Part shown: positions 797-50,463 of the stretch, one piece after another
Numbering within the stretch: position 1 is the first letter of the stretch
Layout of the letters: each line of letters begins with the position of its first letter
Sequence record: MH791414.1
Length of the DNA: 64,000 nucleotides
Reading direction: 5' to 3' (one strand)
Position numbers and translations under genes: made by a program
Notes under the pieces: model-generated
What the model saw: the letters and a program-made list of their open reading frames with translations, nothing else
What the model was told of the DNA's origin: nothing
The model's database searches: none

Positions 797-804
797 CCTA
801 AATA
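797..804 (+). promoter_or_regulatory. late promoter CCTAAATA
   Basis: One of 8 identical intergenic CCTAAATA boxes; directly upstream of tRNA-Ser. Confidence 0.7.
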
Positions 805-811
805 ATATTAT

Positions 812-904
812 GGTAGGTTGGCAGAGGTGGATTATTGCAACGGTCTTGAAAACCGTCGGCGGGAGAAATCTCGTCCGTGGGTTCGAATCCCACACCTACC
901 TCCA
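812..904 (+). tRNA. tRNA-Ser(TGA)
   Basis: Cloverleaf, anticodon arm ACGGT-CTTGAAA-ACCGT, long variable arm, GTTCGAATC, encoded CCA. Confidence 0.95.
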
Positions 905-908
905 AAAT

Positions 909-1001
909 GCGCGAGTGGCGAAGTTGGTTGAAACGCATCGGACTTAAAATCCGATACTGCATAATGGCACACCGTGGGTTCGATTCCCACCTCGCGTACC
1001 A
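909..1001 (+). tRNA. tRNA-Leu(TAA)
   Basis: Anticodon arm TCGGA-CTTAAAA-TCCGA, long variable arm, CCA end. Confidence 0.95.
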
Positions 1002-1010
1002 TAATTAAAT

Positions 1011-1110
1011 GGTTCTGCCCTTACTAATTTAGAGCGAGATAAGCCCTCGCAGATGGTGATGGTAATCCGCAAGAAGACCATAAACAAAGGCTAATTGGTG
1101 AGAACCACCA
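1011..1110 (+). ncRNA. 100-nt small RNA with tRNA-like acceptor stem and ACCA end
   Basis: GGTTCT/AGAACC terminal stem then ACCA; long inner stem; GCGAG/CTCGC hairpin. Confidence 0.6.
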
Positions 1111-1161
1111 ATGGGGATCGCGACAGAATCATTTAATTATGGATTATTTTGGAATTTTATT

Positions 1162-1503
1162 ATGAATAAATTACAACGGGAAACTTATCAAAAAGACGTT
1201 TCTTTTCTTGTAAGGAAAGGTTTGACAATTCAACAAGCTTCTCTTGTTGTAAAACAAACAAAGCCTGAATATGATATGCAAGAAAATATCTATCGATATT
1301 TTAACAAAGACAACAAGGAAACTTATGTGATCCAACGTTTGGGTAAATGTTGTGGTCCATGGCTGAGTGTAAGTTGTCGAAAACTCAACAAAAAAGGTTT
1401 TATTAAGTTTGATTTTTCTGATATAATCTATGTTGAGTATATGGGTATGAAAGTCGAGGCTCATAGAGTCATTTTTGGGAATGTACCAAATGTTATCGTT
1501 TAA
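1162..1503 (+). CDS. hypothetical protein
   Basis: Track ORF 1111..1503; ATG at 1162 preferred because 1111 abuts the small RNA. Confidence 0.65.
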   Translation: MNKLQRETYQKDVSFLVRKGLTIQQASLVVKQTKPEYDMQENIYRYFNKDNKETYVIQRLGKCCGPWLSVSCRKLNKKGFIKFDFSDIIYVEYMGMKVEAHRVIFGNVPNVIV

Positions 1504-1654
1504 AGAATATATTTCTTTGGAAGAAAAAATTGAACATAGAAATGGAAAATGGTATGTTATGGATTCTACTGGTTCTAAGGAATTGGGTGAACATGACTCC
1601 AAAGAAAAAGCCGTTGCTCAACTTCAAGCCATAGAAATAAACAAACATAAATAA
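1490..1654 (+). CDS. 54-aa protein with capsid-targeting-like leader (MLSFKEYISLEE), putative internal head protein
   Basis: Translated by hand: MLSFKEYISLEEKIEHRNGKWYVMDSTGSKELGEHDSKEKAVAQLQAIEINKHK; below the track length cutoff. Confidence 0.65.
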   Translation: MLSFKEYISLEEKIEHRNGKWYVMDSTGSKELGEHDSKEKAVAQLQAIEINKHK

Positions 1655-1662
1655 TTCACTCC

Positions 1663-1670
1663 CCTAAATA
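1663..1670 (+). promoter_or_regulatory. late promoter CCTAAATA
   Basis: Intergenic, upstream of tRNA-Asn. Confidence 0.7.
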
Positions 1671-1707
1671 TTTGTGTTACAATAGAAAATATAAAATCTT
1701 CTTTGGC

Positions 1708-1784
1708 GGTTCGTTAGCTCAGTTGGTTAGAGCGCCCGCCTGTTAAGTGGAAGGTCGTGGGTTCAAGTCCCACACGAACCGCCA
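1708..1784 (+). tRNA. tRNA-Asn(GTT)
   Basis: GGTTCGT/ACGAACC acceptor, loop CTGTTAA, GCCA end. Confidence 0.93.
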
Positions 1785-1798
1785 AAGAGGATTTTAAT

Positions 1799-1939
1799 CG
1801 CTTGTTGAACGTGGGAAAATAGCAAAATCAGGGAAAGTTGTGCACGACGGAACCTTAAAGTAGCTTTCTAAGTACCTGTTGTCTGGCAGTTCACACATAC
1901 GTATATTTGTGATGGGTTCGAGACCCTAACAAGCGTCCT
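1799..1939 (+). ncRNA. about 140-nt tRNA-like RNA (T4 rnaC/species-1-like candidate)
   Basis: CGCTTGTT/AACAAGCG terminal stem, T-arm GGGTTCGAGACCC, inner helix GGAAAGTTG/TAGCTTTCT. Confidence 0.6.
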
Positions 1940-1945
1940 AATTCT

Positions 1946-2026
1946 GGAGACTTTGGTGTATGGCGCACGGTACGTTATAAACCAGCGTACAAGAAACTCC
2001 CGTTCGAATCGGTAGGGTCTCCCCTA
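1946..2026 (+). pseudogene. degenerate tRNA or tRNA mimic, anticodon undefined
   Basis: GGAGACT/GGTCTCC acceptor and GTTCGAATC T-loop, but 11-nt anticodon loop, mismatched T-stem and CCT end. Confidence 0.55.
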
Positions 2027-2047
2027 AATTCTTATAATTTAAAAGAG

Positions 2048-2374
2048 GTTGTCTATGTCGTCGCTAAACGCAAGCCGCTTGGGCGGAAAGGAAAAAATTC
2101 GGTTTATGTAAGTGGATACACCACTGATAATAAACCAGTAGTTTGTAACGTATTTTATCAATCCGAAACAAACGGAATACCGCTTGATATTCTCATCGAG
2201 ACTCTGTATAATTCGGGATATGTCATTGATTGGATTACATTCATAAATGATGCTTTAAATGTTAAGTGGAAGAAAGAAACTATATTCAAGAAGATAAAAT
2301 ACGCTTTTGACGATATAGATATCGAAAACAAAGAAAATACTCTAGATAAAATATCTACCTATCTAGACCTATGA
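2048..2374 (+). CDS. small protein with AlaRS-like ETNGIPLD motif; no in-frame ATG
   Basis: Open frame VVYVVAKRKPLGRKGKNSVYVSGYTTDNKPVVCNVFYQSETNGIPLDILIETL...; the SD-linked ATG at 2055 is out of frame. Confidence 0.55.
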   Translation, partial: VVYVVAKRKPLGRKGKNSVYVSGYTTDNKPVVCNVFYQSETNGIPLDILIETLYNSGYVIDWITFINDALNVKWKKETIFKKIKYAFDDIDIENKENTLDKISTYLDL

Positions 2375-2386
2375 GTTGTCATAGGT

Positions 2387-2459
2387 GTGACCATAGTAGT
2401 AATCGATAGCTATCCGGATTGTGACTCCGGGGGTACGGGTTTGAGTCCCGTTGGTCACC
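2387..2459 (+). tRNA. tRNA-His(GTG), CCA not encoded
   Basis: CCGGA-TTGTGAC-TCCGG anticodon arm, C73 discriminator, followed by CCT. Confidence 0.85.
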
Positions 2460-2481
2460 CCTATGACAATTTAAAACAATT

Positions 2482-2567
2482 GGGTGTGTAACCGGTAATT
2501 GGTAGCCGCACGGTCTGTAAAACCGTTCCCTCTGGGACTGATGGTTCGAGTCCATCCACACCCACCA
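2482..2567 (+). tRNA. tRNA-Tyr(GTA)
   Basis: ACGGT-CTGTAAA-ACCGT, variable arm, ACCA. Confidence 0.95.
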
Positions 2568-2568
2568 C

Positions 2569-2644
2569 GCTGAATTAGCTCATCTGGTAGAGCGACGGTC
2601 TTGTAATCCGTAGGTGGTCCGTTCGAGTCGGACATTCAGCACCA
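2569..2644 (+). tRNA. tRNA-Thr(TGT)
   Basis: GCTGAAT/ATTCAGC acceptor, loop CTTGTAA, ACCA. Confidence 0.92.
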
Positions 2645-2650
2645 ATTTCC

Positions 2651-2727
2651 GGTCCCTTAGCTCAGTTGGTTAGAGCAACCGACTCATAATCGGTGGGTCG
2701 CTGGTTCGAGTCCAGCAGGGATCACCA
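2651..2727 (+). tRNA. tRNA-Ile2/Met(CAT)
   Basis: Loop CTCATAA; body resembles enterobacterial lysidine tRNA-Ile2 as recalled. Confidence 0.9.
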
Positions 2728-2748
2728 GATTTAAAAGGAAAATAATTT

Positions 2749-2988
2749 GTGAAAATGGAATATGTCGGTGATAATAGATTGAAATCGTTTCACGTAAATT
2801 CACCGGATGAATTATTCTCATATAAGCATATTGGATTTTCGAAATGGGATCTTGAAATATTATCATCTAAGATATCAAAAATAGATGTGGTTTATTGGTC
2901 TGATACCCCACCTTGGATAAAAGAAGATAAAATATCTTGGAGTATTGACAAAGATCGTCTGGTTGATTACATTAATAAGCTGTTATGA
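2749..2988 (+). CDS. hypothetical protein within tRNA cluster
   Basis: 79-aa ORF with AAGGA SD. Confidence 0.65.
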   Translation: MKMEYVGDNRLKSFHVNSPDELFSYKHIGFSKWDLEILSSKISKIDVVYWSDTPPWIKEDKISWSIDKDRLVDYINKLL

Positions 2989-3080
2989 GTCCCACAGCTT
3001 TCAAAATTATCAAATGGGATGTTGATGCGCGTATGTAGCCGGGTTATAATGACCAAGATTCATGAAGGGTAAAAGACTAC

Positions 3081-3088
3081 CCTAAATA
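3081..3088 (+). promoter_or_regulatory. late promoter CCTAAATA
   Basis: Immediately upstream of initiator tRNA. Confidence 0.7.
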
Positions 3089-3092
3089 TCTG

Positions 3093-3166
3093 TGCGGGGT
3101 CGAGAAGTGGTGTCTCATGGGACTCATTATCCCACTACGCAGGTTCGAATCCTGCCTCCGCTTCCA
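3093..3166 (+). tRNA. tRNA-fMet(CAT)
   Basis: 1:72 mismatch and three G:C pairs in anticodon stem (TGGGA/TCCCA), which are initiator identity elements. Confidence 0.88.
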
Positions 3167-3170
3167 AATT

Positions 3171-3242
3171 CGGTGTGTAACTCAGTCGGTTAGAGGACGG
3201 GCAACTTGCCCGTTGGTCGCGGGTTCGAGTCCCGTCACACCA
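3171..3242 (+). pseudogene. tRNA mimic with collapsed anticodon loop
   Basis: Normal D- and T-arms; anticodon arm ACGGGC-AACTT-GCCCGT (6 bp stem, 5-nt loop, no U33). Confidence 0.6.
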
Positions 3243-3268
3243 AATAGTTTTATTATGAGGTTTTTATT

Positions 3269-3463
3269 ATGTCTTCAATTAAAAATATAGTTGAAAACTG
3301 GACTGTTGGTGAAGGGATCATTCATTGGAAGAATAAAACTTCTAGTTTAGTGGTTTTTGGATTTGCTCCAAACGGAGAACCTGCCTTTAAGTTCAAAGGA
3401 AAAGAAAGATTGACATCAATACGTCAGGTAGAAAAATCTATTTTATCTGCAAAATTGATTTAA
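3269..3463 (+). CDS. hypothetical protein
   Basis: 64-aa ORF, GAGG SD. Confidence 0.65.
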   Translation: MSSIKNIVENWTVGEGIIHWKNKTSSLVVFGFAPNGEPAFKFKGKERLTSIRQVEKSILSAKLI

Positions 3464-3469
3464 TAAAAT

Positions 3470-3545
3470 GCGTCGTTAGTTCAGTTGGTAGAACACCGGA
3501 CTTTTAATCCGGGGGTCACTGGTTCGAGCCCAGTACGGCGTACCA
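3470..3545 (+). tRNA. tRNA-Lys(TTT)
   Basis: CCGGA-CTTTTAA-TCCGG, ACCA. Confidence 0.95.
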
Positions 3546-3551
3546 AATTTC

Positions 3552-3628
3552 GGGGGATTAGCTCAGTTGGAATGAGCGACTGGTTTGCAACCAGTAGGTC
3601 ATCGGTTCGAGCCCGATATCCTCCACCA
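3552..3628 (+). tRNA. tRNA-Ala(TGC)
   Basis: ACTGG-TTTGCAA-CCAGT; G3:U70 identity pair. Confidence 0.95.
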
Positions 3629-3639
3629 AATAATTTCAA

Positions 3640-3714
3640 GCCTGTATGGTGTTAATGGTAACATGTCGTCCTTCCAAGTCGAAGTTCCGGGTTCGAGTCC
3701 CGATTCAGGCTCCA
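3640..3714 (+). tRNA. tRNA-Gly(TCC)
   Basis: Loop CTTCCAA, U73 discriminator, CCA. Confidence 0.9.
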
Positions 3715-3828
3715 AAAGAAATAAGGCATAGGGCTCTAGATTCCTAGTCAGTTTCTCACCCCTAGTTGCTGCATATACCCCGACTTTTCCGTGACTGGTG
3801 TAAAAAGGTTTGGGTAAACGTATTAAAT

Positions 3829-3907
3829 CCGCGTGTAGGCTAGTCAGGTCGAGGTCGTCTGGTTTGGGACCAGAAAGTCGGGTGTTCGAATCACCCCACG
3901 CGGACCA
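3829..3907 (+). tRNA. tRNA-Pro(TGG)
   Basis: TCTGG-TTTGGGA-CCAGA, ACCA. Confidence 0.93.
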
Positions 3908-4558
3908 AATTCTATAGAGTGAGTAACCGGTTGCAAACGGACTCATAAAGTCGTCAAACCTTAGTACCCTCTCCCGAAAATATCGGTGATGCGACTAAAA
4001 TGAAGGCGCAAATTGAGAATTTATTTTCACAAAGCTATTGCTTCTGGATTTAAATTCTCAGATACTCTTAATTTGAGCGGGTTACTGGTCATCCCCTCGT
4101 AAAACAATATCAAAATCTTAGTGGTTCGGTCGCGACATATGAACCAAGAGTATCTGAGAATTTAAGTTTAAAAGAACTTCCTTCGGGAATGGGGTACATA
4201 GACGGGGCGCACCCCATTGTACCGACGCTTTAAGTAGCCCGTGCGAGAGACTAAAAAGCTGACCCTACCCTCTCCCAGTAATGGTGATGGAGCTTCCTTT
4301 CCTGTAATAAGGTTCCAGTCCGTGACGGGTAAAAGGTTACATAAGGAGAATTGCTTGTGAATGACCACTGATTCAAGCCAACACATAAGCGCGTCTATCA
4401 TGACGATAAATAGGCTTAGATTCCCGTAAGGGCCTAAGCGTAAAAGTAACGAGCAAGACCGTCTTACAGGCGTAGCCCATTGGGGTGATGATGTTTGTAT
4501 GTTTGGGCTCGGGTAGCCAATGCTATTAAGTCTGGTGATGGTGCGACCAGATCTTTTC
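3908..4558 (+). ncRNA. candidate large structured ncRNA (about 650 nt, ROOL/GOLLD-like class)
   Basis: No sense ORF; perfect 20-bp helix, UUCG and GNRA tetraloop hairpins, many further stems; between tRNA-Pro and tRNA-Trp. Confidence 0.7.
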
Positions 4559-4559
4559 T

Positions 4560-4634
4560 AGGGTGTTAGTATAGCGGTATTATGCCGGATTCCAAATCCG
4601 TGCGACTGGGGTTCGAATCCTCAACACCCTGCCA
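4560..4634 (+). tRNA. tRNA-Trp(CCA)
   Basis: AGGGTGT/ACACCCT acceptor, loop TTCCAAA, GCCA. Confidence 0.92.
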
Positions 4635-4657
4635 AATTTTAATGAGATGATTATATT

Positions 4658-4876
4658 ATGAAAATTGTTCGTAAGAATGGTGATGAAATTATTTTTCATA
4701 CACAGGTTAGTAAATTCTATGGCGTTATTAAAGAAGGTGTTCTTTATGTTGGTACATCTCCGACAACTAAACCATCTGTAGAAAGTTCTGTGTTTATTAT
4801 AAATATGGATGATGTAGCTTATTTCCATGAAAGAAATGAAAACCAATTTGATTACTATTTCGCCCCTAATAAGTAA
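4658..4876 (+). CDS. hypothetical protein
   Basis: 72-aa ORF between tRNAs. Confidence 0.65.
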   Translation: MKIVRKNGDEIIFHTQVSKFYGVIKEGVLYVGTSPTTKPSVESSVFIINMDDVAYFHERNENQFDYYFAPNK

Positions 4877-4934
4877 TTTTGGATGATCTTGTTACTTTGT
4901 ACAAAGAAGCGTAAGTAACGGAAAAACCGTCTTA

Positions 4935-5010
4935 GGTGGATTAGCTCAGTAGGTAGAGCAAACGACCGATAATCGTTTGGTCGCTGGTTCAAGTCCAGCA
5001 TTCACCACCA
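4935..5010 (+). tRNA. tRNA-Ile(GAT)
   Basis: AACGA-CCGATAA-TCGTT (C at position 33), ACCA. Confidence 0.88.
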
Positions 5011-5016
5011 AATTCA

Positions 5017-5104
5017 GGAGAAGTGGATGAGCGGTTTAAATCGCTCCCCTGCTAAGGGAGTAAACCGAAAGGTTTCGAGAGTTCGAATCTCTCTTTCTCC
5101 GCCA
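5017..5104 (+). tRNA. tRNA-Ser(GCT)
   Basis: CTCCC-CTGCTAA-GGGAG, long variable arm, GCCA. Confidence 0.95.
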
Positions 5105-5110
5105 AATATA

Positions 5111-5187
5111 GAGGATGTAGTAGAGTTGGTTAATATTCCAGCCTGTCACGTTGGAGATCGCGGGTTCGAGCCCCGTCATCCTCGCCA
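5111..5187 (+). tRNA. tRNA-Asp(GTC)
   Basis: CCAGC-CTGTCAC-GTTGG, GCCA. Confidence 0.95.
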
Positions 5188-5243
5188 AATTAGGCCCATC
5201 TCAGCCTTTAATGAGACGTAGAAACTAACCAAAAGGAAATGAT

Positions 5244-6677: not shown

Positions 6678-7075
6678 AATTAATAATGAAGTATGATATG
6701 AAACGGATCTCGGATAAAGTATCGAAATTCGTTACATTGGGTTTGGTATCAGTTGCTCGAATCCATTATCTACATCTTACTACAAATAGTTACCCTAGAC
6801 ACATGGCTCTGGACGAGTTCTATAAAGAGTTCCCAGATGGTTACTTAGATAGGGTCGCAGAGAGTGCTTTAGCAAACACTCTAACCCTAACCTATACCGA
6901 ACCTCAACTATCCAATATGGATGCGTTAGAAGTGCTTCAGGGGCTGTATAATGAAGGGGTTGAACTTCTGGAACTACTGGAAGGTAAGAGGGAATTCAAA
7001 GGTACGGTGAATTGTATTGAGGATTCTTTAGAATTCATTAAACTTGTGATATACAAAGTGAAAAGATTCAACTAA
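6674..7075 (+). CDS. ferritin/Dps-like four-helix protein
   Basis: HYLHLTTNSYPRHMALDEFY...LDRVAE motif typical of phage ferritin-like proteins. Confidence 0.6.
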   Translation: MKLIMKYDMKRISDKVSKFVTLGLVSVARIHYLHLTTNSYPRHMALDEFYKEFPDGYLDRVAESALANTLTLTYTEPQLSNMDALEVLQGLYNEGVELLELLEGKREFKGTVNCIEDSLEFIKLVIYKVKRFN

Positions 7076-7099
7076 AAAGGCTCCTTCGGGAGCCTTTTT
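7074..7099 (+). terminator. rho-independent terminator GGCTCC-TTCG-GGAGCC-T5
   Basis: UUCG hairpin plus T tract. Confidence 0.9.
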
Positions 7100-7105
7100 G
7101 TTTTC

Positions 7106-7113
7106 CCTAAATA
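7106..7113 (+). promoter_or_regulatory. late promoter CCTAAATA
   Basis: Between terminator and kinase gene. Confidence 0.75.
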
Positions 7114-8818: not shown

Positions 8819-8821
8819 TAA

Positions 8822-8844
8822 TAGGCTCCTTCGGGAGCCTTTTT
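8822..8844 (+). terminator. terminator GGCTCC-TTCG-GGAGCC-T5
   Basis: Same hairpin as at 7074. Confidence 0.9.
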
Positions 8845-8849
8845 CATTT

Positions 8850-8857
8850 CCTAAATA
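8850..8857 (+). promoter_or_regulatory. late promoter CCTAAATA
   Basis: Between terminator and ParB-like gene. Confidence 0.75.
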
Positions 8858-14883: not shown

Positions 14884-15059
14884 CCCACAACCCAACAGAA
14901 TTAGAGGTCATCTATGCGGAGATGTATGAAAGTTTGTTGTTGAGGCTAGGAAGACCATACGCCGATATAGAAATGATATTGATCCTTCAACACGAAGGCT
15001 TATCTTCAACCGAGTCAATTAAAGTAGTTGAGTACGTTAGGAAAGTGAACGGGATTTAA
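14880..15059 (+). CDS. 59-aa hypothetical protein
   Basis: Hand-translated MTHNPTELEVIYAEMYES..., ATGA overlap. Confidence 0.55.
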   Translation: MTHNPTELEVIYAEMYESLLLRLGRPYADIEMILILQHEGLSSTESIKVVEYVRKVNGI

Positions 15060-15070: not shown

Positions 15071-15104
15071 AAGGCTCCAACCTAAATAAGGTTGGAGCCT
15101 TTTT
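15071..15104 (+). terminator. terminator whose loop carries the late promoter
   Basis: AAGGCTCCAACC-TAAATAA-GGTTGGAGCCTT-TTT. Confidence 0.8.
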
Positions 15105-15124
15105 GTTTTTGGAGATTAAATTAA

Positions 15125-15505
15125 ATGACAGCTGGATATAAAGTGGTTGCTTTTCTTTTCCTATTGTCAATTGTCGGTGGTGGTGGATACTACATGTTCC
15201 ATAGAATAGAGCAACAGGCTATTACCATCGGAGAGATGACACAACAGATTGAAAACTATACAACACGAATAACCGCCCTAGAAACGTCTATAAGCGATTT
15301 TAAAACCAAGTCGTCCGAGTATAACAAGGAGACGGAGAAATCGAATAGGGAGCTTTCTGTGAGGCTTGATAAGCTAGATAAAAATGTACAACGAGGTAAA
15401 GACGCGATCAAGGCAAAACCAAAACTGGTTGAGAAACTGATCCAGAAAGATTACATGGACTTTAGCCAGCGTATGGATTGTTTAACGTTGGAGAAATGTA
15501 AATGA
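15125..15505 (+). CDS. inner-membrane spanin (Rz-like)
   Basis: N-terminal TM then coiled coil, C-terminal Cys; overlaps a lipoprotein gene. Confidence 0.8.
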   Translation: MTAGYKVVAFLFLLSIVGGGGYYMFHRIEQQAITIGEMTQQIENYTTRITALETSISDFKTKSSEYNKETEKSNRELSVRLDKLDKNVQRGKDAIKAKPKLVEKLIQKDYMDFSQRMDCLTLEKCK

Positions 15506-15804
15506 AAAAAATTATAATAGCACTTTCTATACTGGTTTTATCTGCATGTTCTTCTACGCCAGTGGAACCCGCAAAAGATTTAGTCTATCACCCAACAAGA
15601 CCGGTCCCGGTTAAAACTTATGTTCCTAATTGGGTGGTGGTTGCTGATGGGGATAAAACAGTTGTGGGTATGACCTATGAAGAGAGTTTAAAATATAGAG
15701 CTTGGTTGGAGAAATTGGGAAATTATATAGATTCACAAAATAAAATGTTGTGCGTTTATAGAGAGGAATTAAAAGAAGACCAATGTAAAAAGGCTCCAAA
15801 ATAG
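15502..15804 (+). CDS. outer-membrane spanin lipoprotein (Rz1-like)
   Basis: Lipobox LSAC, Pro-rich linker. Confidence 0.8.
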   Translation: MKKIIIALSILVLSACSSTPVEPAKDLVYHPTRPVPVKTYVPNWVVVADGDKTVVGMTYEESLKYRAWLEKLGNYIDSQNKMLCVYREELKEDQCKKAPK

Positions 15805-15814
15805 GAGCCTTTTT
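15787..15814 (+). terminator. terminator GGCTCC-AAAATA-GGAGCC-T5
   Basis: Hairpin plus T tract at end of o-spanin gene. Confidence 0.8.
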
Positions 15815-15819
15815 AATTA

Positions 15820-15827
15820 CCTAAATA
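15820..15827 (+). promoter_or_regulatory. late promoter CCTAAATA
   Basis: Upstream of tail fibre gene. Confidence 0.8.
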
Positions 15828-15862
15828 ATAAGGTAAAATGATTTCAATTAGAGGATTTAGAG

Positions 15863-20464: not shown

Positions 20465-20470
20465 TTAATT

Positions 20471-20493
20471 AGGCTCCTTCGGGAGCCTTATTT
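20471..20493 (+). terminator. GGCTCC-TTCG-GGAGCC hairpin with weak T tract
   Basis: Between fibre and lysozyme genes. Confidence 0.65.
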
Positions 20494-20506
20494 CAAGGGG
20501 TTTTAT

Positions 20507-24237: not shown

Positions 24238-24486
24238 TTACTCACCTTCACGAAAAAACATACCATTCTTTACCAGAACATGATTGAGGTTATAGATAAT
24301 AAAGCCCCGAGTCTCATAAGGGGTAACAACCCGATATTCAACATCTTTCGAATCGTGGTTAACGTGGAAAGAATAAACCCAATCCTTAACCTTCAATTGC
24401 AAACTAGTAAAACCGGGGACAAACGGCATTACTTCTTTGTATCCTTCACTCTTTTTGATACTAACAAACTCTTTTACTGAAATCAT
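24238..24486 (-). CDS. hypothetical protein
   Basis: AAGGA SD. Confidence 0.65.
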   Translation of the reverse strand: MISVKEFVSIKKSEGYKEVMPFVPGFTSLQLKVKDWVYSFHVNHDSKDVEYRVVTPYETRGFIIYNLNHVLVKNGMFFREGE

Positions 24487-24512: not shown

Positions 24513-24694
24513 TAAATCAATTCTCTACCACAAGACGATACATTGTTCATGTCTAGGCAAGAATTGATTATACATTGAATGGTGAGCTATAGCGAGCCAC
24601 GCGCTTGCGCGACTCACTTCGTTCGTATTTCTAACTGTAGATCTTCTATATAAATACTTATAGGGAATTTATAATTTGATTACAGATGAAACTA
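24513..24694. repeat. composite intergenic repeat, copy 1
   Basis: AATCAATTCT inverted repeat, GC box and 26-bp AT core shared with 61916-62116. Confidence 0.9.
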
Positions 24695-25171
24695 ACCAAT
24701 CACTTTCTTTACAAGAGCACCATCAAACAGCAATCCTTTTTGTTGAGCTGCCTTCTTACAGGCTCCCATCACTTGACCGATGTTTGAACCCACATTGAGT
24801 TGGCTAATGACCTCTTTGATGTGTTCTTCATCGAACACTTTCGGGAGATAGGACCCTAGCAGTTCACGTTCAATCATCAAGTCTGTGAATTTGATGTCAG
24901 TTTTAAGAATATCCATCACTTCTTGATTGGTCATATCGTTTGATACGGATACAACCCGTTTACGGATCTCGGTAACTGCTTCGTCAATGTTTTTAACGAA
25001 TTTACGAATAACCGCTTGAACTTGCTCGTCAGTTACTACCTGATTACCGGAAGGACTTGCTTCACCAATCAGGGTTGTTAGAGCGTTGATACGAACTTTC
25101 CCGTAATGGGTCGAACGATCTTCAGATTTGCGGAATGCGATTTGGTCTTTTTTGATTTTTTCAAGCAGCAT
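24692..25171 (-). CDS. GatB/YqeY domain protein
   Basis: LLEKIKKDQ...LTTLIGE...IRKFVK...YLPK...IGQVMG. Confidence 0.85.
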   Translation of the reverse strand: MLLEKIKKDQIAFRKSEDRSTHYGKVRINALTTLIGEASPSGNQVVTDEQVQAVIRKFVKNIDEAVTEIRKRVVSVSNDMTNQEVMDILKTDIKFTDLMIERELLGSYLPKVFDEEHIKEVISQLNVGSNIGQVMGACKKAAQQKGLLFDGALVKKVIG

Positions 25172-43642: not shown

Positions 43643-43663
43643 AATCTTTTCCTCAGTTAGGTA

Positions 43664-43710
43664 TCTCGTTTCGATGTAGATATAATACCATAACCAAGAA
43701 TCAGATCAAC
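43664..43710 (-). promoter_or_regulatory. early promoter plus ATCGAAACGAGA leader
   Basis: TTGATC-16-TATTAT. Confidence 0.7.
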
Positions 43711-44012
43711 TACTTTTGTAAAAAATCTTTGATCTGATATCGGTCAACTTCATAAGAAATGCTACCATCGTTCCAAACTCGTTTAGTAACATCAACACGA
43801 AACATATCACCAGCTTTAGCAAAACAACCACTACATCGTTTAGCTACATATTGGTCAATAACAATACCATCAGATGTTTTCAATTCAATCCGCTGATGTT
43901 TTGCTCTCTTAACAAAATGAGTAACAACTACAGTATCTTTATAGGTCTCACCCGAAACTGGAATACAACCAACCAGCATTAAAGCAACAACACCAACAAC
44001 CAACCTTTTCAT
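43710..44012 (-). CDS. lipoprotein, paralog family L
   Basis: Lipobox LVGC; DTVVVTHFV. Confidence 0.85.
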   Translation of the reverse strand: MKRLVVGVVALMLVGCIPVSGETYKDTVVVTHFVKRAKHQRIELKTSDGIVIDQYVAKRCSGCFAKAGDMFRVDVTKRVWNDGSISYEVDRYQIKDFLQK

Positions 44013-44015
44013 AAA

Positions 44016-44210
44016 TCAATCCTCAAAATACCAGCATGGATGATTATCATGGAAATCAACCGGGACACCCCATTCACCAGATACATCATGACAAACATTG
44101 GAATCTTTCTTGTAGAAACCAATAGCATCACAGGCCGGTGCTCCCGCGTAACGAAGAACATAGAACTTGGTATGATTCGGAACATCTTTAAATTCACATA
44201 CTCTTTTCAT
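44016..44210 (-). CDS. hypothetical protein
   Basis: AAGGA SD (duplicated). Confidence 0.65.
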   Translation of the reverse strand: MKRVCEFKDVPNHTKFYVLRYAGAPACDAIGFYKKDSNVCHDVSGEWGVPVDFHDNHPCWYFED

Positions 44211-44242
44211 AACAGTTCCTTACTCTTTTCATAACAGTTCCT
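44199..44242. repeat. 22-bp tandem duplication of SD and start codon
   Basis: TACTCTTTTCATAACAGTTCCT x2. Confidence 0.95.
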
Positions 44243-44523
44243 TAAGAAATCTTTCCAGCTTGATAAGCGTCGTAAGCATCCAGCCAATCATCACGATCAA
44301 GACCATGACCATCAGCAACCAGAATCACACCTTCAAGCGGTTTCCAATAAGAAGAATCATGAATCAAATCTTCCACCTTATCCCAACAACCATTTTCAAT
44401 AAAGATAGCCAGCTTTTGATGGTTAGTCCGATTCAATTCGCTCGGAGTAGTGCGAGTACGTTCACCACAAGCACCAACAAACGCATCAGGATTGCTTTTA
44501 ATATAGTCAAGAATAGTTTTCAT
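44242..44523 (-). CDS. hypothetical protein
   Basis: GGAG SD. Confidence 0.7.
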   Translation of the reverse strand: MKTILDYIKSNPDAFVGACGERTRTTPSELNRTNHQKLAIFIENGCWDKVEDLIHDSSYWKPLEGVILVADGHGLDRDDWLDAYDAYQAGKIS

Positions 44524-44526
44524 AAT

Positions 44527-44838
44527 TTACTCCAAGTCAATATCCCAAACACATACTTTAACAAATTGCTCGCCGATTTCCCAAGAAGAATAGAAACCAT
44601 TTTCTTGAAACTTGGGGATAAGATGATTGCGAATGAAATCATATATAGACACACAGTTATTCAGTTCTCTATCAATCAACCCTTCAATATAAAGAACAGA
44701 GATACCAAGGTCTAGCACTTCATTGGTAGCCATACCACAAACATGATCATTATAGAGCACATTAACGAACTCTACAATATTCTTTTCGCGATCCTGTTTC
44801 TTCTTACGAACATGTTCTTTCAATTCAGCAGCATTCAT
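44527..44838 (-). CDS. hypothetical protein, paralog of 56770..57099
   Basis: MNAAEL...LIP.F..NGF. Confidence 0.7.
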   Translation of the reverse strand: MNAAELKEHVRKKKQDREKNIVEFVNVLYNDHVCGMATNEVLDLGISVLYIEGLIDRELNNCVSIYDFIRNHLIPKFQENGFYSSWEIGEQFVKVCVWDIDLE

Positions 44839-44842
44839 AATC

Positions 44843-45178
44843 TTAACCCCCAAACACATTATCAAAATCAGGATGTTCCCAACCTTGAACTTTCTCTTTA
44901 TCTATATTAACAAGACCAATGATATCAGCGCAACACTTTTCGATATATTCTTTATCATCAGTCCAGAACTCAACCATCACCCAAGTAGTAGTAGAAGCCG
45001 GATCCCATCCTTGAAGAAACATCTTATCCTTAACATATCCACGAACCTTCCACATATCATCATGACTAAGGCCAAGAATCTGGATATTGAAATTCTTATC
45101 ACTCATCTCAAATTTACCATAGATAGCAGCAATAACAACACCATTCTTTGCATCACGGAAGTTATAGAGCTTATGCAT
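44843..45178 (-). CDS. hypothetical protein
   Basis: 111 aa. Confidence 0.7.
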   Translation of the reverse strand: MHKLYNFRDAKNGVVIAAIYGKFEMSDKNFNIQILGLSHDDMWKVRGYVKDKMFLQGWDPASTTTWVMVEFWTDDKEYIEKCCADIIGLVNIDKEKVQGWEHPDFDNVFGG

Positions 45179-45182
45179 AATC

Positions 45183-45479
45183 TTAATCCTTGTAGTTAAT
45201 TTGACACTTCAGAACATAAACCATCGGAGCTTGATAATTCTCATCACAGAAGTCGAAATCATCATAGCAAAGTTCTTGGACAAGCTCAATAGAGTGAATG
45301 TCTTTAATGAGAGAAAAATCACGCGCTACTTTCTTCAAAGAATCCACAGAACCCTTGATAACCAACATGGCCGTTTCTTCCAGATACATACCAAAAACAG
45401 ATTTGATATCATACCCACGAGATTTCAACAGAACTTCCATTTCTTTAGCAGTAGTACGGATTGCGTTTTGAATAGTCAT
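45183..45479 (-). CDS. hypothetical protein
   Basis: First gene after early promoter. Confidence 0.7.
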   Translation of the reverse strand: MTIQNAIRTTAKEMEVLLKSRGYDIKSVFGMYLEETAMLVIKGSVDSLKKVARDFSLIKDIHSIELVQELCYDDFDFCDENYQAPMVYVLKCQINYKD

Positions 45480-45750
45480 CTTGTTTTCTCCCTCTCAGTT
45501 AGTAAGTACATGGTACACCACCACCAAAAAGGATGCAAACATTTTATTTAAAGAATCAAACATTCGCTTTTGATAATCAAACATTTTCAAATTTCGGTAT
45601 TCGATAAGAATTCCATATAATGGTGATAAATTGTAAATATTTGTTAAAAGAAACCCACAAATGACGCGGGTTAGAGCGATTTTGTTTGAATTTATGTTAA
45701 TACAAGAAAAACGCACTAAAATGGTGCAAAACCCCTCGCTACACCGATTG

Positions 45751-45945
45751 TCAATTTACAACGGGTGAAAACATCACGTATCCATTGTTATAGATAGTCA
45801 AAGTTCCACTATCGTCCTCAAAAGCGAAATAATCCTCAGATCCAGTGAGTGGAACATATGCAACGCCGGGAACATCTCTAATCGCTGCAACTAGCTCAAC
45901 TACACAAGATCCCTTGTGAGATTCGTAAACAGTTTGGATATTCAT
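45751..45945 (-). CDS. hypothetical protein, paralog of 46099..46332
   Basis: IxTVY...EDDSGxL. Confidence 0.7.
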   Translation of the reverse strand: MNIQTVYESHKGSCVVELVAAIRDVPGVAYVPLTGSEDYFAFEDDSGTLTIYNNGYVMFSPVVN

Positions 45946-46098
45946 TTGCTTTCCCTCGATTCCCTCGATTCAATCTTACCTTCCCACCACCGGGTTACGG
46001 GCATCTGGTCACTATGGCGTCGCTTCTTGTTCTGCTCTCGTTCTTTGGCTTTCTTCATCTGGTATTGGAAGAAATAATCGCTATTAAATTCAGACATA

Positions 46099-46332
46099 TT
46101 ATTTCCTTATGATACAAGTTTTGGGGGTGAAATCAAATTCACCATCGATAAACACCCGGAGAGATCCGCTATCATCCTCATAGGTAAACGCGAGGGGTGA
46201 TTCACAATTAGCAATAGCCAGCGTTACCTTGTTACCCTTGGAGGATAGGCGCTCGATTGCTTCGATGAGATTCTTAACTGGATTAATAGAACCACCAGCA
46301 ACGAAATTATTGTAAACGGTTTCGATACTCAT
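46099..46332 (-). CDS. hypothetical protein, paralog of 45751..45945
   Basis: IxTVY...EDDSGxL. Confidence 0.7.
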   Translation of the reverse strand: MSIETVYNNFVAGGSINPVKNLIEAIERLSSKGNKVTLAIANCESPLAFTYEDDSGSLRVFIDGEFDFTPKTCIIRK

Positions 46333-46335
46333 ATT

Positions 46336-46593
46336 TTATTCCCCTTCAATATCGAAGTAATTACGTTCACTCATGAACACAAAAGCACCCCAACCGTTGT
46401 TGGTGTCGTTGATAGTACCATCGTCATTCAGAATGATTTCTTCCCCGTTACCGTCTACCAGTTCGATAGTCCCATTGAAACAGTTTACCGCTTCGTGGGG
46501 AGCGTCTTTCATGTATTCTGCGATAGCTTGGTTAGCACGACCCAGACTAGCGAATTCTATTCGGGCTTGGACTGATTTAAATTTGATTTGCAT
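46336..46593 (-). CDS. FKS-family protein
   Basis: MQIKFKSVQARIEF...ERNYFD. Confidence 0.75.
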   Translation of the reverse strand: MQIKFKSVQARIEFASLGRANQAIAEYMKDAPHEAVNCFNGTIELVDGNGEEIILNDDGTINDTNNGWGAFVFMSERNYFDIEGE

Positions 46594-46599
46594 TGGTTA

Positions 46600-46806
46600 T
46601 TACTCCATGGTGTCTACAATGTCAAAGAAAACTTCTACGTCTTTCTTAGAGATAACAAACTGCTCGTTTTCATAATCTTGACCATTATCCTTAACCCAGA
46701 ACGGGAGAAGGCCATAGGTTTCAGAAAGAGGAACAGCCATCTGACCGTTTGTATATGCCATAAGGTTGATATGGTCTTGAGATTTGAACTGGATTTTAAT
46801 CTGCAT
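46600..46806 (-). CDS. FKS-family protein
   Basis: IQFKSQDH...FFD. Confidence 0.7.
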   Translation of the reverse strand: MQIKIQFKSQDHINLMAYTNGQMAVPLSETYGLLPFWVKDNGQDYENEQFVISKKDVEVFFDIVDTME

Positions 46807-46815
46807 GATATCCCC

Positions 46816-47016
46816 TTACTTGATGATGTCAAAGTGTTTGAGGGATTCTTCGTCTATGACAAAGAAAGACAAACCAGCAACGTTAGCAATGAAACCATAC
46901 GGGGCTTCGATTACATCAAACCAACCATCACCCATCGCGTTAGCGAGGATATCGAATTTAGGATGCAACCCGGAGAACAGTTTCGCGTCTTCAACAGATT
47001 TAAATTTGACTTTCAT
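46816..47016 (-). CDS. FKS-family protein
   Basis: MKVKFKSVEDAKLF...KHFD. Confidence 0.75.
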   Translation of the reverse strand: MKVKFKSVEDAKLFSGLHPKFDILANAMGDGWFDVIEAPYGFIANVAGLSFFVIDEESLKHFDIIK

Positions 47017-47025
47017 AATATCCCC

Positions 47026-47268
47026 TTAGAAATTCTTAACAACGATATGAGTAATGGAATCACCAAAAGATTCTAACGCTTTACGAGTGGACATACAACC
47101 CATTTCCACCACAGAACCATCTTCTTTTTTGATGGATACGTTAACCACGAAGTCCATACCACCAGAAGTCAGTTCACCCTTCATGGTGATGGTGCCTTCA
47201 GTGGAAGTACATACCAGAGTTTGATTCCCGAGCATGTTATTCAGACGATTGCGAAGTTTGGTATTCAT
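47026..47268 (-). CDS. hypothetical protein
   Basis: GAGGG SD before MNTKLR. Confidence 0.7.
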   Translation of the reverse strand: MNTKLRNRLNNMLGNQTLVCTSTEGTITMKGELTSGGMDFVVNVSIKKEDGSVVEMGCMSTRKALESFGDSITHIVVKNF

Positions 47269-47584
47269 GGTTAGTCCCTCTCGTTTCGATAGAGAGGATT
47301 TCATCCTCTCGAAGAATCGCACCGCGATTCGATATGGATATAATACCAGAACCAGATTACCGCGCAACTACTTTTTCAAAGTATTTTCCATATTCCGGAT
47401 TGAATGTTTTTGTACAACCCGCGAGATGTAACCATCATGGTAATCCATTTATTACCCTGACAATATTTCACCACAAGCCCCTTGCGAGTCACAGACAGAG
47501 TGCCAATCCAATGATAGTTCCCACACTGGTTAGACCCAATCCCATAGACAACACACAGGAATATGACTCGAATAATGGAGATCA

Positions 47585-47745
47585 TACTAACCCTCTACTA
47601 TCTCAGCAGAACCAAATTCTACTCGGACCATCATATCAGACAGACTGGACATACAGGGTTCACCAGATTCATAAACCCCGTCATATTCCCCGGTAAAGGT
47701 AATGAGTTGTTCACCTTCTTTAATTTTGACCATTGAGTATTTCAT
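47585..47745 (-). pseudogene. small gene with apparent 1-nt frameshift
   Basis: MKYSMVKI continues as EGEQLITFTGEYDG...EIVEG in another frame. Confidence 0.4.
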
Positions 47746-47747
47746 GA

Positions 47748-48152
47748 TTAACGACGCTCCACCTTGGCAACATTTTTCTTGAACTCTTCAACCCGCTTTT
47801 CCATCAGCTCAACATAAGCAACCGGAGCCTTACGGGCTTTAGCAGCATCAAGCTGATCTTCCAAACCGAACACCTCACGGGTGACGTAGAGCTGGGCAAT
47901 GGTTAGGGTATATTTGTCGGCCTGCTCATCAGTCATATCAGCAACAACACCATAGTTCTGACCGTTAGCAATATCAACACCGTGCTCAGGACGGAAATGG
48001 TTACCCAGCATCGCACCAGTATCCGGATGACACAGGGTCATTTGTTTTTTGCCACAAGATTTAACAACAGCGCGGGACCAAGAGAAGGTGCCTTTACCGT
48101 CTACGCTTGCAACCTGAATAACAATCTGACCCTTGGTGAATGCTGCTTTCAT
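47748..48152 (-). CDS. hypothetical early protein
   Basis: AAGGA SD, after promoter and leader motif. Confidence 0.75.
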   Translation of the reverse strand: MKAAFTKGQIVIQVASVDGKGTFSWSRAVVKSCGKKQMTLCHPDTGAMLGNHFRPEHGVDIANGQNYGVVADMTDEQADKYTLTIAQLYVTREVFGLEDQLDAAKARKAPVAYVELMEKRVEEFKKNVAKVERR

Positions 48153-48202
48153 GTCTAGTTCCTTTTCCGTATCTCGTTTCGATAGAGATATAATAACCTA
48201 GA

Positions 48203-48430
48203 CTATTCCCAATGCGCAACCACTTTTTCAAAGTATTTGCTTTCTTCTTTTACTTCGATGGTAAAGTCACCATCAACCGTATCCCACCACCAGCCAGTTG
48301 CATCAACATTAACCGCGAATGGATTCATACCATAACGCTCAACCAGATTTTTGTTGTGGCTGGAATAACCAAGGCTGATACGAGCAAAAGCCTCCATATC
48401 TGATTCAGATTTGAACTTGATAAAAAACAT
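48203..48430 (-). CDS. FKS-family protein
   Basis: IKFKSESD..SHN..YGMNPF..ESKYFE. Confidence 0.75.
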   Translation of the reverse strand: MFFIKFKSESDMEAFARISLGYSSHNKNLVERYGMNPFAVNVDATGWWWDTVDGDFTIEVKEESKYFEKVVAHWE

Positions 48431-48442
48431 AATGACCCCTTA

Positions 48443-48709
48443 TTAATATTGACTTTCTACAGCAGCAACCACACGACCGACATACTTATCGGTAGTCAGC
48501 GCCATATCGATTACCATATCAACAACCTCTTCATTGGCTGCGAAAATGGTTGCGTAGGTATCGACACAGGTAACCGTGCAATGTTTGTTGATTTTGATAA
48601 TCCGGGTATCACCATCCCGCGTGACGTTATCGGGATACATGGCTGCGAGGATGCGCCAAATATTAATATCCAAATCACTGGTATAGAAAACCGGGGAGAT
48701 GTTTTTCAT
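48443..48709 (-). CDS. hypothetical protein
   Basis: AAGGA SD. Confidence 0.7.
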   Translation of the reverse strand: MKNISPVFYTSDLDINIWRILAAMYPDNVTRDGDTRIIKINKHCTVTCVDTYATIFAANEEVVDMVIDMALTTDKYVGRVVAAVESQY

Positions 48710-48718
48710 GACTATTCC

Positions 48719-48946
48719 TTATACGTTAAGAATCTTGATGTCAGAACGATTTTTCATTTCATCTACTTGGGAATTTGCGACCCGAATAGTTTCATTCCGG
48801 GGATACGAAGCACTGAAAGGAATACATTCGGTGGTCAAATATCCCACAACCTTTTCTTTGGCCTTGGAAGGGTTCATAGCATAAACAAGAAAACTTTCCA
48901 TACCATTAACAGTTTTCATCACCACAATATAATAGAAGTAGTTCAT
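48719..48946 (-). CDS. hypothetical protein
   Basis: After early promoter. Confidence 0.7.
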   Translation of the reverse strand: MNYFYYIVVMKTVNGMESFLVYAMNPSKAKEKVVGYLTTECIPFSASYPRNETIRVANSQVDEMKNRSDIKILNV

Positions 48947-49015
48947 AGTTTCCCCTATTCGATATGGATATAATACCCCAGACAGGATTATGAAAGCAAC
49001 AACTATTTCATAGTT

Positions 49016-49240
49016 TTATTCCTTATCCATATCAGCAAGAGACATTGGATCGATTCGGTCAAAAATGAGAATGGTTTTCATATTGTATGGAGTATCGAGA
49101 CCATCAACTTTTTTCATCCAGCAAGGGAATTCCTCTGGTTCATAATAGGTATAGCTTTCTTCCCATACCCCGATAGTAGAAACGAATTCCTCTCGGGTGT
49201 TGAAGTAGGTATAACCCAGAGCTTCCATAATCTTTTTCAT
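49016..49240 (-). CDS. hypothetical protein
   Basis: 74 aa. Confidence 0.65.
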   Translation of the reverse strand: MKKIMEALGYTYFNTREEFVSTIGVWEESYTYYEPEEFPCWMKKVDGLDTPYNMKTILIFDRIDPMSLADMDKE

Positions 49241-49253
49241 AGCCTTACACCTT

Positions 49254-49481
49254 TTACTTGAATTTTACCACTTCGTACTGGTCGGGGTCGATTTGTGTGT
49301 AGATATCTTGGTGGACGTTATCCAACGCATCTTGCATTTTTTTAATATCGCTTTCTGTGTAGATGAAAACTAAACATCCTTCATCATACTCGTCTGCATC
49401 AACAAGATATACACATTCCCCACAAACTTCAAGAACAGCCAGACGGTTTGTGTATTTATTTTTCAGTGCGTAGAGTTTCAT
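49254..49481 (-). CDS. hypothetical protein
   Basis: 75 aa. Confidence 0.65.
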   Translation of the reverse strand: MKLYALKNKYTNRLAVLEVCGECVYLVDADEYDEGCLVFIYTESDIKKMQDALDNVHQDIYTQIDPDQYEVVKFK

Positions 49482-49493
49482 AATTACCCCTTA

Positions 49494-49775
49494 TTAAACC
49501 ATTTCGTTCAGATTCTTGAAAAGAACCTCTACGTAGTTATTCATATCTTTCCAAGAACGGATAGTACGAACATCACGAATGAAACAGAAAGCCACTTTCA
49601 CATCATGGTCACCAGAAGAAACCAGCATATCGTATACCAGATTGTTGGTGTAGTGCAATGCAGTTTTGCACTTAGCCAACTCCTTAGAAGGAAGAGAAAT
49701 ATGATTGAAACCGTCACACGCAAACCCATCGCGAGTCAGAGAAACCAAAGCAGCTTCAGCAATCTTCTTTTTCAT
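49494..49775 (-). CDS. hypothetical protein
   Basis: GAGGA SD after promoter. Confidence 0.7.
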   Translation of the reverse strand: MKKKIAEAALVSLTRDGFACDGFNHISLPSKELAKCKTALHYTNNLVYDMLVSSGDHDVKVAFCFIRDVRTIRSWKDMNNYVEVLFKNLNEMV

Positions 49776-49817
49776 CTTCTTTTCCTTCTCAGTTGGTGTA
49801 CAAGTATAGTAACCCCA

Positions 49818-50454: not shown

Positions 50455-50463
50455 GATATCTCC

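Follow-up and report, generated by a model that had tools for sequence, protein, structure and literature searches.

What is the function of a composite intergenic element that appears twice, with one of its parts flipped, in the last 64,000 bases of the genome of Aeromonas phage Aswh_1 (MH791414.1)? We analysed this stretch (the window; record coordinate = window coordinate + 165,730) together with the rest of the 229.7-kb genome, which belongs to a T4-like phage of the Straboviridae, subfamily Emmerichvirinae, and with the genomes of its relatives. The repeat is a conserved, six-copy and previously unannotated DNA element of T4-like Aeromonas phages, built from an AT-rich core, a GC-rich module and, at three of the loci, an accessory hairpin. 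Our best reading, held tentatively, is that the copies form a dispersed family of origin-type cassettes in the Emmerichvirinae, each combining a promoter, an unwinding element and a hairpin.

The first window copy (copy E) lies between small minus-strand genes at 24238–24486 and 24692–25171, and the second (copy F) between genes at 61513–61893 and 62137–62379. The initial annotation had described this pair from the letters of the window, and its description is accurate. A 26-mer is exactly shared by 24638–24663 and 61969–61994, with no match at three or fewer mismatches in 100 shuffles, and the surrounding similarity of about 70 bp comes to 69 nt at 87% identity (24626–24694 versus 61957–62025). 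The 18-mer at 24609–24626 occurs as its exact reverse complement at 61916–61933 (chance expectation 0), and the remaining GC segment is likewise inverted between the copies. Both copies are flanked by an inverted repeat whose arms carry AATCAATT/AATTGATT. At copy E (24515–24569), 10-nt arms pair AATCAATT(CT) at 24515–24524 with (AG)AATTGATT at 24560–24569 across a 35-nt spacer; at copy F (62031–62119), much longer arms of 25 nt at 62031–62055 and 62095–62119, 92% complementary, enclose a 39-nt loop. The proposal that this is a modular composite cis-element and not a chance repeat was borne out, and the pair is not an unconserved oddity of one genome, as the annotation had allowed it might be: a search of the whole genome and of relatives recovered six copies in Aswh_1, conserved across two genera.

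We named the six loci A to F. Copy A lies at record position 48.3 kb, upstream of a transglycosylase gene; copy B at 92.4 kb, with the end of tail-fibre gene 35 on one side and a gene for a SegE-like GIY-YIG endonuclease on the other; copy C at 115.0 kb, two genes past inh and upstream of a DprA-like gene; copy D at 158.2 kb, between genes 54 and 26; and the window copies E and F at 190.4 and 227.7 kb. Copies B, C and D adjoin virion-structure genes (tail-fibre, head or baseplate). The six copies are the longest dispersed repeats of these genomes, and the same six loci are occupied in phages 65, CC2, AS-zj, avDM6, G2, AS-yj, AP1 and others of the genera Ishigurovirus and Ceceduovirus. The core is present in 21 phage records, all from Aeromonas phages of these two genera, and is annotated in none of them. 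A search of 185,579 bacterial and archaeal species, each represented by one genome, did not find its pattern, and we accordingly rejected a host-derived repeat. The endonuclease gene beside copy B (record 91172–92068, plus strand; L004:41172–42068) is annotated as hypothetical, is oppositely oriented and matches Pfam PF19835 at E = 6e-29; nothing ties the endonuclease to the other five copies, and a link between this homing endonuclease and the family was set aside.

The core spans 67 nt (80 nt in copy B, where it is symmetrised), and its aligned, conserved profile runs from TTTCTAATTATA through an AT-rich centre to TTTATAnTTTGATTnCAnnTGAAACTA. It is a nested quasi-palindrome, with outer arms of about 11 nt and an inner TCTATA/TATAGA pair, in which TATAG-type motifs recur about every 11 bp. 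The core of copy E occupies 24627–24694 in forward sense on the plus strand (nhmmer E = 2.3e-17), and its last three bases are the stop codon of the minus-strand gene at 24692–25171. That of copy F occupies 61957–62025 in the same sense (E = 1.8e-19) and contains a 67-nt stretch 100% identical to copy A.

Adjoining the core in every copy is a GC module of about 45 nt, made up of a left box CGAACGnAGTGAG, a short central hairpin and a right box GTTCGCTnCGCTCAC; no GC box was found in the Aswh_1 genome apart from a core. The central stem varies in sequence but stays complementary (CGCC/GGCG, CGC/GCG, CGGC/GCCG, CGCGC/GCGCG, CCC/GGG or CATGC/GCATG). The module of copy E (24582–24626) is flipped relative to the core and has an outer GTGAG/CTCAC pair, a central stem CGCGC-TT-GCGCG (24600–24611) and an ACGAAGT motif on the minus strand (24616–24622). 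In copy F the module (61917–61956) is unflipped, with ACGAAGT in the left box (61920–61926), a central stem CGCC-GGA-GGCG (61931–61941) and GCGTAGC on the minus strand in the right box (61946–61952). The modules of B, C, D and F match at 100% identity; relative to the core, those of B and C run one way and those of D and F the other. The accessory hairpin occurs at loci C, E and F, where its arms carry AATCAA(A/T)T. A longer homologous repeat occupies the locus of copy E in CC2 and AS-zj. At locus F, CC2 has arms similar to those of Aswh_1, and the hairpin of phage 65 differs in the sequence of its arms, so that structure is conserved here rather than sequence.

Comparison among relatives separates what is held constant from what is free to turn. 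Between Aswh_1 and CC2 the cores are 81–93% identical, and the intergenic DNA on either side is unalignable. The copies within phage 65 share lineage-specific variants (identity 0.86 within 65 versus 0.77 between lineages), a pattern that points to conversion between copies or to co-evolution with a factor. At locus B the place and direction of the GC module are kept, and the core, compared with that of CC2, 65 and avDM6, is turned round and symmetrised in Aswh_1. At locus C it is the core that keeps its direction; 65, AP1, G2 and AS-yj have the GC module in one orientation and Aswh_1 has it in the other. Locus D of phage 65 holds two head-to-head cores, one with a flipped centre. Because these inversions arose independently at orthologous loci, the flipped GC box seen in the window represents a recurrent evolutionary event and a general property of the element, which is independent of orientation. 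Template switching or recombination within the quasi-palindromes would explain the flips. The suggestion in the initial annotation of a small invertible or mobile unit held in part: the modules are inverted relative to each other, also at orthologous loci, whereas active switching found no support. Neither a recombinase nor a crossover site was seen near any copy, and phage ZPAH1, 98–99.9% identical to Aswh_1 at these loci and separated from it by multi-base, conversion-like changes, has the same arrangement at B, C and F, the three loci compared, which speaks against ongoing inversion. Recent mobility inside these genomes is not supported either, the six loci being syntenic and not variable.

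No empty orthologous site was found among the relatives examined, apparent absences being Ns or poly-A filler in deposited assemblies. Runs of N, poly-A filler of 30-odd bases or collapsed sequence lie exactly at the elements in AS-sw (L047:620–700), AsSzw2 (L048:690–720) and AS-zj (L023, L011 and L024), so the low copy counts in these records are probably assembly artefacts, caused either by repeats and hairpins or by real heterogeneity among the reads. In the 254-kb AP1 record (MT713136.1), the left flank of locus B (nrdA and the segE-like gene) is joined through the element to the right flank of locus D (gene 26), and further gene fragments are juxtaposed at elements (L176:1–2927 and L177:1225–2665). 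These joins are most likely mis-assemblies at dispersed repeats, the alternative being real recombination between copies. A scaling of copy number with genome size, as the seven copies of AP1 might imply, was dropped since this record looks mis-assembled. At locus A, CC2 (L013:3640–3700) and 65-like metagenome contigs (L038 and L040) carry a small extra open reading frame (ORF), and the right end of the core runs directly up to its Shine-Dalgarno sequence and start codon; the ORF is absent from phage 65 and Aswh_1, which places an indel exactly at the element border.

Metagenome matches to the core were confined to 65-like contigs, with the separate case of contig L033 from an unrelated phage. 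There, the core is centred in nested inverted repeats and bracketed by inverted GC boxes of 32 nt that are 97% complementary; it sits in a non-coding gap of 1.4 kb from which gene clusters diverge on either side, and two more GC boxes lie nearby. This contig encodes an anti-repressor-like protein and a terminase 29% identical to those of Vibrio phages, and in the 14 kb available it shares only a lysozyme with Aswh_1. Units resembling the GC module also occur in phage contig L074 (12050–12472), where three 41-nt units (GC box plus hairpin; two direct and one inverted) flank 2.2 copies of a perfect 27-nt tandem repeat. These iterons lie in a 1.1-kb gap with SbcC/SbcD-like genes on one side and a helicase-like gene on the other, a layout resembling that of an origin. 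As a side observation, the two-box GC pattern (CGAACGnAGTGAG ... GTTCGnTnCnCTCAC) gave one hit apiece in genomes of a Halosimplex, a Leptospira, a Sphingobium and a member of the Patescibacteria (L050:5082–5123, L051:2673–2708, L052:4957–4992 and L053:1301–1347), against about 0.06 expected by our own uniform-composition estimate. Further GNA-loop boxes lie near these four hits, the Patescibacteria one being between rpsF and ssb.

The occurrence in L033, with its 32-nt terminal inverted repeats, raises the prospect of a selfish or neutral palindromic repeat, similar to miniature inverted-repeat transposable elements (MITEs) or palindrome-associated transposable elements, kept uniform by gene conversion in a phage that recombines very readily, occasionally transferred from phage to phage and without function for the phage. 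Palindromic miniature elements of this kind are exemplified by the Correia elements of Neisseria. The concerted evolution of the copies and the conversion-like differences between Aswh_1 and ZPAH1 fit such a repeat, as does the tendency of the quasi-palindromic modules to invert and grow more symmetric, and the likeness to MITEs extends to short non-coding units with an AT-rich interior, the GC-rich terminal inverted repeats of L033 and presence in unrelated genomes. We nevertheless consider this account unlikely. The six positions were kept across two genera while the surrounding intergenic DNA diverged beyond alignment, and neither empty sites nor other variation in insertion site was found. 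The copies of the T4-like phages have one GC module instead of two, in long-fixed positions, with no terminal inverted repeats, target duplication or transposase, and even spacing is not expected of a selfish repeat.

That spacing is among the features that argue for a replication origin, one of the possibilities named in the initial annotation and the one that we too place first. Gaps between the six copies range from 22.6 to 50.4 kb, with one copy per ~38 kb; points placed at random on a circle would seldom be so regular (P = 0.012 for the minimum gap, 0.002 for the coefficient of variation and 0.003 for the maximum gap). The genome has four major strand and GC-skew switch points, and copies C, D and E are no more than 3 kb away from them, a proximity with a chance of ~0.02 by our own binomial estimate, the threshold of which was picked after seeing the data. 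Phage T4 has at least five active origins in 169 kb, of which oriE, oriF and oriG tend to lie at strand-switch points, with oriA and oriC as exceptions (PMC3016281). The two phages are therefore alike in density, with one origin or element per 34–38 kb, and in the location of some of them near switch points.

The cores are also among the least stable DNA of the genome. Among non-overlapping 60-bp duplex windows ordered from the least stable, they rank 2, 4, 5, 8, 14 and 15 (out of 229,494 windows; z = 3.0–3.6), copy F being fifth and copy E fourteenth, which places them in the top 0.004–0.07% of genome windows. On the reverse strand they carry a sigma-70-like motif, (T/G/A/C)TG(C/T/A)AA-16/17-TATAA(G/T), at a fixed position in 21 of 21 copies from six phages, with 8–10.5 of 12 matches, and the ~30 nt downstream of its −10-like hexamer are ~85% A+T, as expected of the unwinding element of a T4-type R-loop origin. 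In copy E the motif (24657–24685, minus strand; CTGTAA at 24685–24680, a 17-nt spacer and TATAAG at 24662–24657; 8/12) points toward the GC module and the gene at 24238–24486. In copy F (61988–62016, minus strand; TTGCAA at 62016–62011, a 17-nt spacer and TATAAG at 61993–61988; 9/12) it faces the GC module and the gene with its start at 61893, and no other promoter-like site was found between the motif and that start codon. The region upstream of the motif is not conserved.

In this arrangement the element resembles T4 oriF and oriG, which span ~100 bp and consist of a promoter-like motif followed by very AT-rich DNA of low stability. The origin transcript of T4 may run sense (oriF) or antisense (oriG) to neighbouring genes; in the T4 record the oriG primer RNA runs opposite to gene 34, so the antisense orientation of the motif at some loci is no objection to an origin. 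There are differences as well. The origins of T4 have no shared local motif (PMC3016281), whereas the six Aswh_1 copies are near-identical and conserved across genera. T4 origin promoters are MotA-dependent middle promoters without an attached GC hairpin module, in contrast to the sigma-70-like motif of the element, a candidate origin promoter, and to the module beside it. Closer in promoter type is oriE, which has an early-type (host sigma-70) promoter instead of a MotA-dependent one and short phased repeats, comparable to the TATAG-type motifs ~11 bp apart in the core. Yet oriE is a single locus with 12-nt direct repeats of no proven role, these iterons being of undefined function (PMC3016281), whereas the repeats of the element are short, partly inverted and enclosed in a quasi-palindrome.

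The GC module adds a second likeness to known initiation signals. The two 'n' positions in its boxes are the middle bases of GNA triloops, reading ACGnAGT on one strand and GCGnAGC on the other, with A or T at n in each case (ACGAAGT or ACGTAGT, and GCGAAGC or GCGTAGC). In phages 65 and avDM6 the closing pair of the triloop changes from C:G to T:A, on both sides. Mini-hairpin DNA of the form GCGNAGC has been reported at the priming sites of phages G4, St-1 and alpha3, at RSF1010 ssiA and in N4 promoters (PMC13037366). The element shares with these the C:G-closed GNA triloop, the free middle base and the position beside other small hairpins. The known examples lie where priming or transcription begins on opened DNA, and they act on single-stranded DNA of phages or plasmids with a dedicated primase or polymerase, whereas the motif described here lies in a double-stranded T4-like genome and was recognized from sequence alone.

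We infer transcription, opening, priming and fork initiation at the elements, along the following lines. Early in infection, host RNA polymerase would start at the core promoter; transcription and supercoiling would then open the AT core, by the logic of T4 oriF and oriG, and the transcript would stay annealed there as an R-loop primer. Once single-stranded, the GC module could fold on either strand into a small GC hairpin and a GNA-triloop mini-hairpin, and these adjacent hairpins may resist single-strand-binding protein and keep the bubble open, or give the helicase–primase an entry point. Forks would start at ~38-kb intervals around the 230-kb genome. Core and module, both near-symmetric, would work in either orientation and could have been flipped over evolutionary time with nothing lost. 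Like the oriF promoter of T4, which serves uvsY, the core promoter probably has a second task at loci C, E and F, the expression of the gene downstream.

Several observations weigh against this origin reading. The sigma-70-like motif is only moderate, in that the first base of its −35 hexamer varies and part of the 'spacer' is more conserved than the hexamer, and a stricter consensus scanner misses the motif in the core. As a control on duplex instability, the annotated oriF and oriG regions reached only the top 1.2% and 8.6% of a 48-kb T4 segment; with such weak specificity, instability fits an unwinding element and was rejected as diagnostic of one. The unwinding elements of T4 origins can be replaced by unrelated DNA (PMC3016281), and since they need no specific sequence, unwinding alone cannot explain near-identity over 67 nt. 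That near-identity would need a sequence-specific factor, for which we found no candidate. Folding of eight module strands as DNA was no better than that of shuffled sequence (z = −0.7 to +0.4; about −0.5 for the GC module), and an exceptional thermodynamic hairpin was rejected on these ordinary nearest-neighbour scores. Finally, the spacing and strand-switch statistics are post hoc and rest on six points, and because the six loci are a single inherited arrangement, other genomes do not replicate the spacing test. A stronger version of the origin reading, in which a sequence-defined, portable cassette (a core with a built-in promoter plus mini-hairpin priming signals) supplies six interchangeable, evenly spaced origins and has moved between unrelated phage families, seems to us unlikely.

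The orientation of the motif relative to genes bears on a second account. At C, E and F a transcript from the motif would cross the GC module and enter the next gene, for which we saw no other promoter; the order in gene sense at these loci, and at B in most genomes, is terminator or hairpin, core with reverse-strand motif, GC module and gene. This is the order that might be expected of cassettes akin to the promoter(early) stem-loop elements (PeSLs), in which the core would be an early promoter, possibly bidirectional, the GC module and hairpins would be terminators, attenuators or 5′ stabilizers, and the repeats would mainly supply homology for modular shuffling, with no role in replication. 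PeSLs, which pair a stem-loop with a sigma-70-like promoter, are established in other T4-like phages (PMC2839356, PMC4122927) and are the closest described kind of element. Those of RB49/phi1, T4/PST and KVP40/nt-1 are likewise repeated composite intergenic cassettes in which an AT-rich, promoter-like segment is joined to a stem-loop, here represented by the module with its covarying central stem, and PeSLs and the element may both act as sites of recombination and of ORF gain and loss; the ORF gained directly against the core at locus A in CC2 and 65-like contigs matches the association of PeSLs with indels. The PeSL papers do not cover these phages, and the portions of the literature on this phage group available to us hold no description of the element.

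We regard such a regulatory cassette as possible, if doubtful. PeSLs number ~50 per genome, are concentrated in hyperplastic regions, face the downstream ORF up to its Shine-Dalgarno sequence and start codon, and conserve two hexamers; the element has six evenly spaced copies, with B, C and D by virion genes, lies in both orientations relative to genes, is conserved over all 67 nt and not just in two hexamers, and has a stem-loop module with conserved flanking boxes that inverts independently. The downstream genes at A and D, and at B in Aswh_1, have promoters of their own and the motif faces away from them; core orientation at one locus also differs between relatives. The GC module lacks a consistent T-run and flips relative to the promoter motif. 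Furthermore, canonical terminators form a family of their own in this phage, and an early-promoter cassette of different sequence, TTGnnn-16/18-TATTATATC followed by a conserved leader, is abundant in it. This separate cassette recurs on the minus strand across window positions 43644–56212 as AT-rich upstream DNA, TTGnnn, 16–18 nt, TATTATATC and a CATCGAAACGAG-like leader, followed by a Shine-Dalgarno sequence and start codon (for example at 43664–43689, 47322–47347, 48172–48197, 48952–48977 and 50996–51021). Judged by this layout, it looks like the early-promoter (PeSL-type) family of the phage itself, unrelated in sequence to the core. The terminators are GGCTCC-TTCG-GGAGCC hairpins with T-runs (7074–7106, 8820–8851, 20468–20499, 15094–15125 and 15804–15835), several of them directly followed by the CCTAAATA late-promoter motif.

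Late transcription was the other promoter role at issue. The core contains TATAAATA on the plus strand, with the local genes on the minus strand, as the initial annotation had observed, and the late promoters of Aswh_1 itself are, as it also stated, of the form (C)CCTAAATA, which we saw upstream of 10 of the 16 late genes examined. CTAAATA preceded by Cs, and not TATAAATA, stands upstream of genes 23, 24, 22, 20, 19, 15, 13, wac, 9 and 48. Given this group consensus, and because TATAAATA is replaced by TATTAATATA-type sequence in the cores of 65 and avDM6, we rejected the octamer as a working late promoter of the T4 type. A CTAAATA motif does lie at locus C (record 115.03 kb; L005, ~15025–15040), between the start of the DprA-like gene and the GC module, on the opposite strand and directed into the element. 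It is conserved in 65, AP1, G2, AS-yj and Aswh_1 (at the same place in L043–L046), and as a motif it predicts a late antisense or non-coding transcript across copy C.

Such a transcript, of perhaps ~170–190 nt and ending at a hairpin, together with the covariation of the central GC stem, is what favours a family of small non-coding RNA genes, or else a T4-type late antisense promoter, as the identity of the element. We hold this to be very improbable. For both window copies and related loci, Rfam gave no match better than E = 0.01, those seen being plant microRNA models, and a known RNA family was excluded on that basis. RNAalifold gave weak energies of −13 and −12 kcal/mol over 117 nt with two covarying pairs (ten copies of the same arrangement, both strands), on which grounds an elaborate conserved RNA fold was rejected. 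Independent flips of the modules would change the RNA, and the other five loci have no consistent promoter and terminator pair. For the late promoter, the octamer is not that of the group and is absent in 65 and avDM6.

Conservation of the whole core, rather than of two hexamers, also invites an array of sites bound by a protein of the host or the phage for some genome-wide purpose besides initiation, such as condensation, looping, packaging or recombination hot spots cut at cruciforms. Even spacing and orientation independence are consistent with an array of this kind, as are the TATAG-type motifs ~11 bp apart and the presence of AATCAA(A/T)T in both the core and the accessory inverted repeats. 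We think it decidedly unlikely: no candidate protein was found, only a lysozyme is common to Aswh_1 and the 14 kb available of L033, and elsewhere in the Aswh_1 genome neither promoters nor intergenic sites show an excess of the 7-mer AATCAAA. As an analogue of the MotA box, AATCAAA was rejected, with 123 occurrences in the genome, mostly coding, only 14 of which have TAnnnT at 10–13 nt; no Mot-box analogue was found. An IHF-type site, WATCAANNNNTTR, was rejected by eye for mismatches in its TTR part.

Elsewhere in the window we observed a cluster of tRNA-like repeats at ~800–5200, with common T-arm and acceptor sequences (repeat families D1, D3, D4 and D13). Three neighbouring minus-strand genes share an N-terminal coding segment with 63–72% identity over 89 nt (50122–50210, 50366–50454 and 51299–51387), a similarity that suggests a small paralogous family of the early region. 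In extract L003 (27525–28487, plus strand), a lone plus-strand gene within a minus-strand block encodes CapR-homology domains (three matched stretches) and DUF723, with a Pfam E value of 2e-38.

The elements coincide with Ns, filler and probable mis-joins in deposited records, which is relevant to assembling and engineering these Aeromonas phages as candidates for phage therapy in aquaculture. If the element proves to be a regulatory or recombination cassette instead of an origin, it would extend the PeSL concept to an orientation-free, evenly spaced element. Were the portable cassette to hold true, it would be the first origin motif shared within the T4 superfamily, and an origin behaving as a mobile module. 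Under the origin reading that we tentatively prefer, a conserved six-copy, origin-like element would supply origin candidates, open to direct testing, across an entire subfamily of jumbo T4-like phages.

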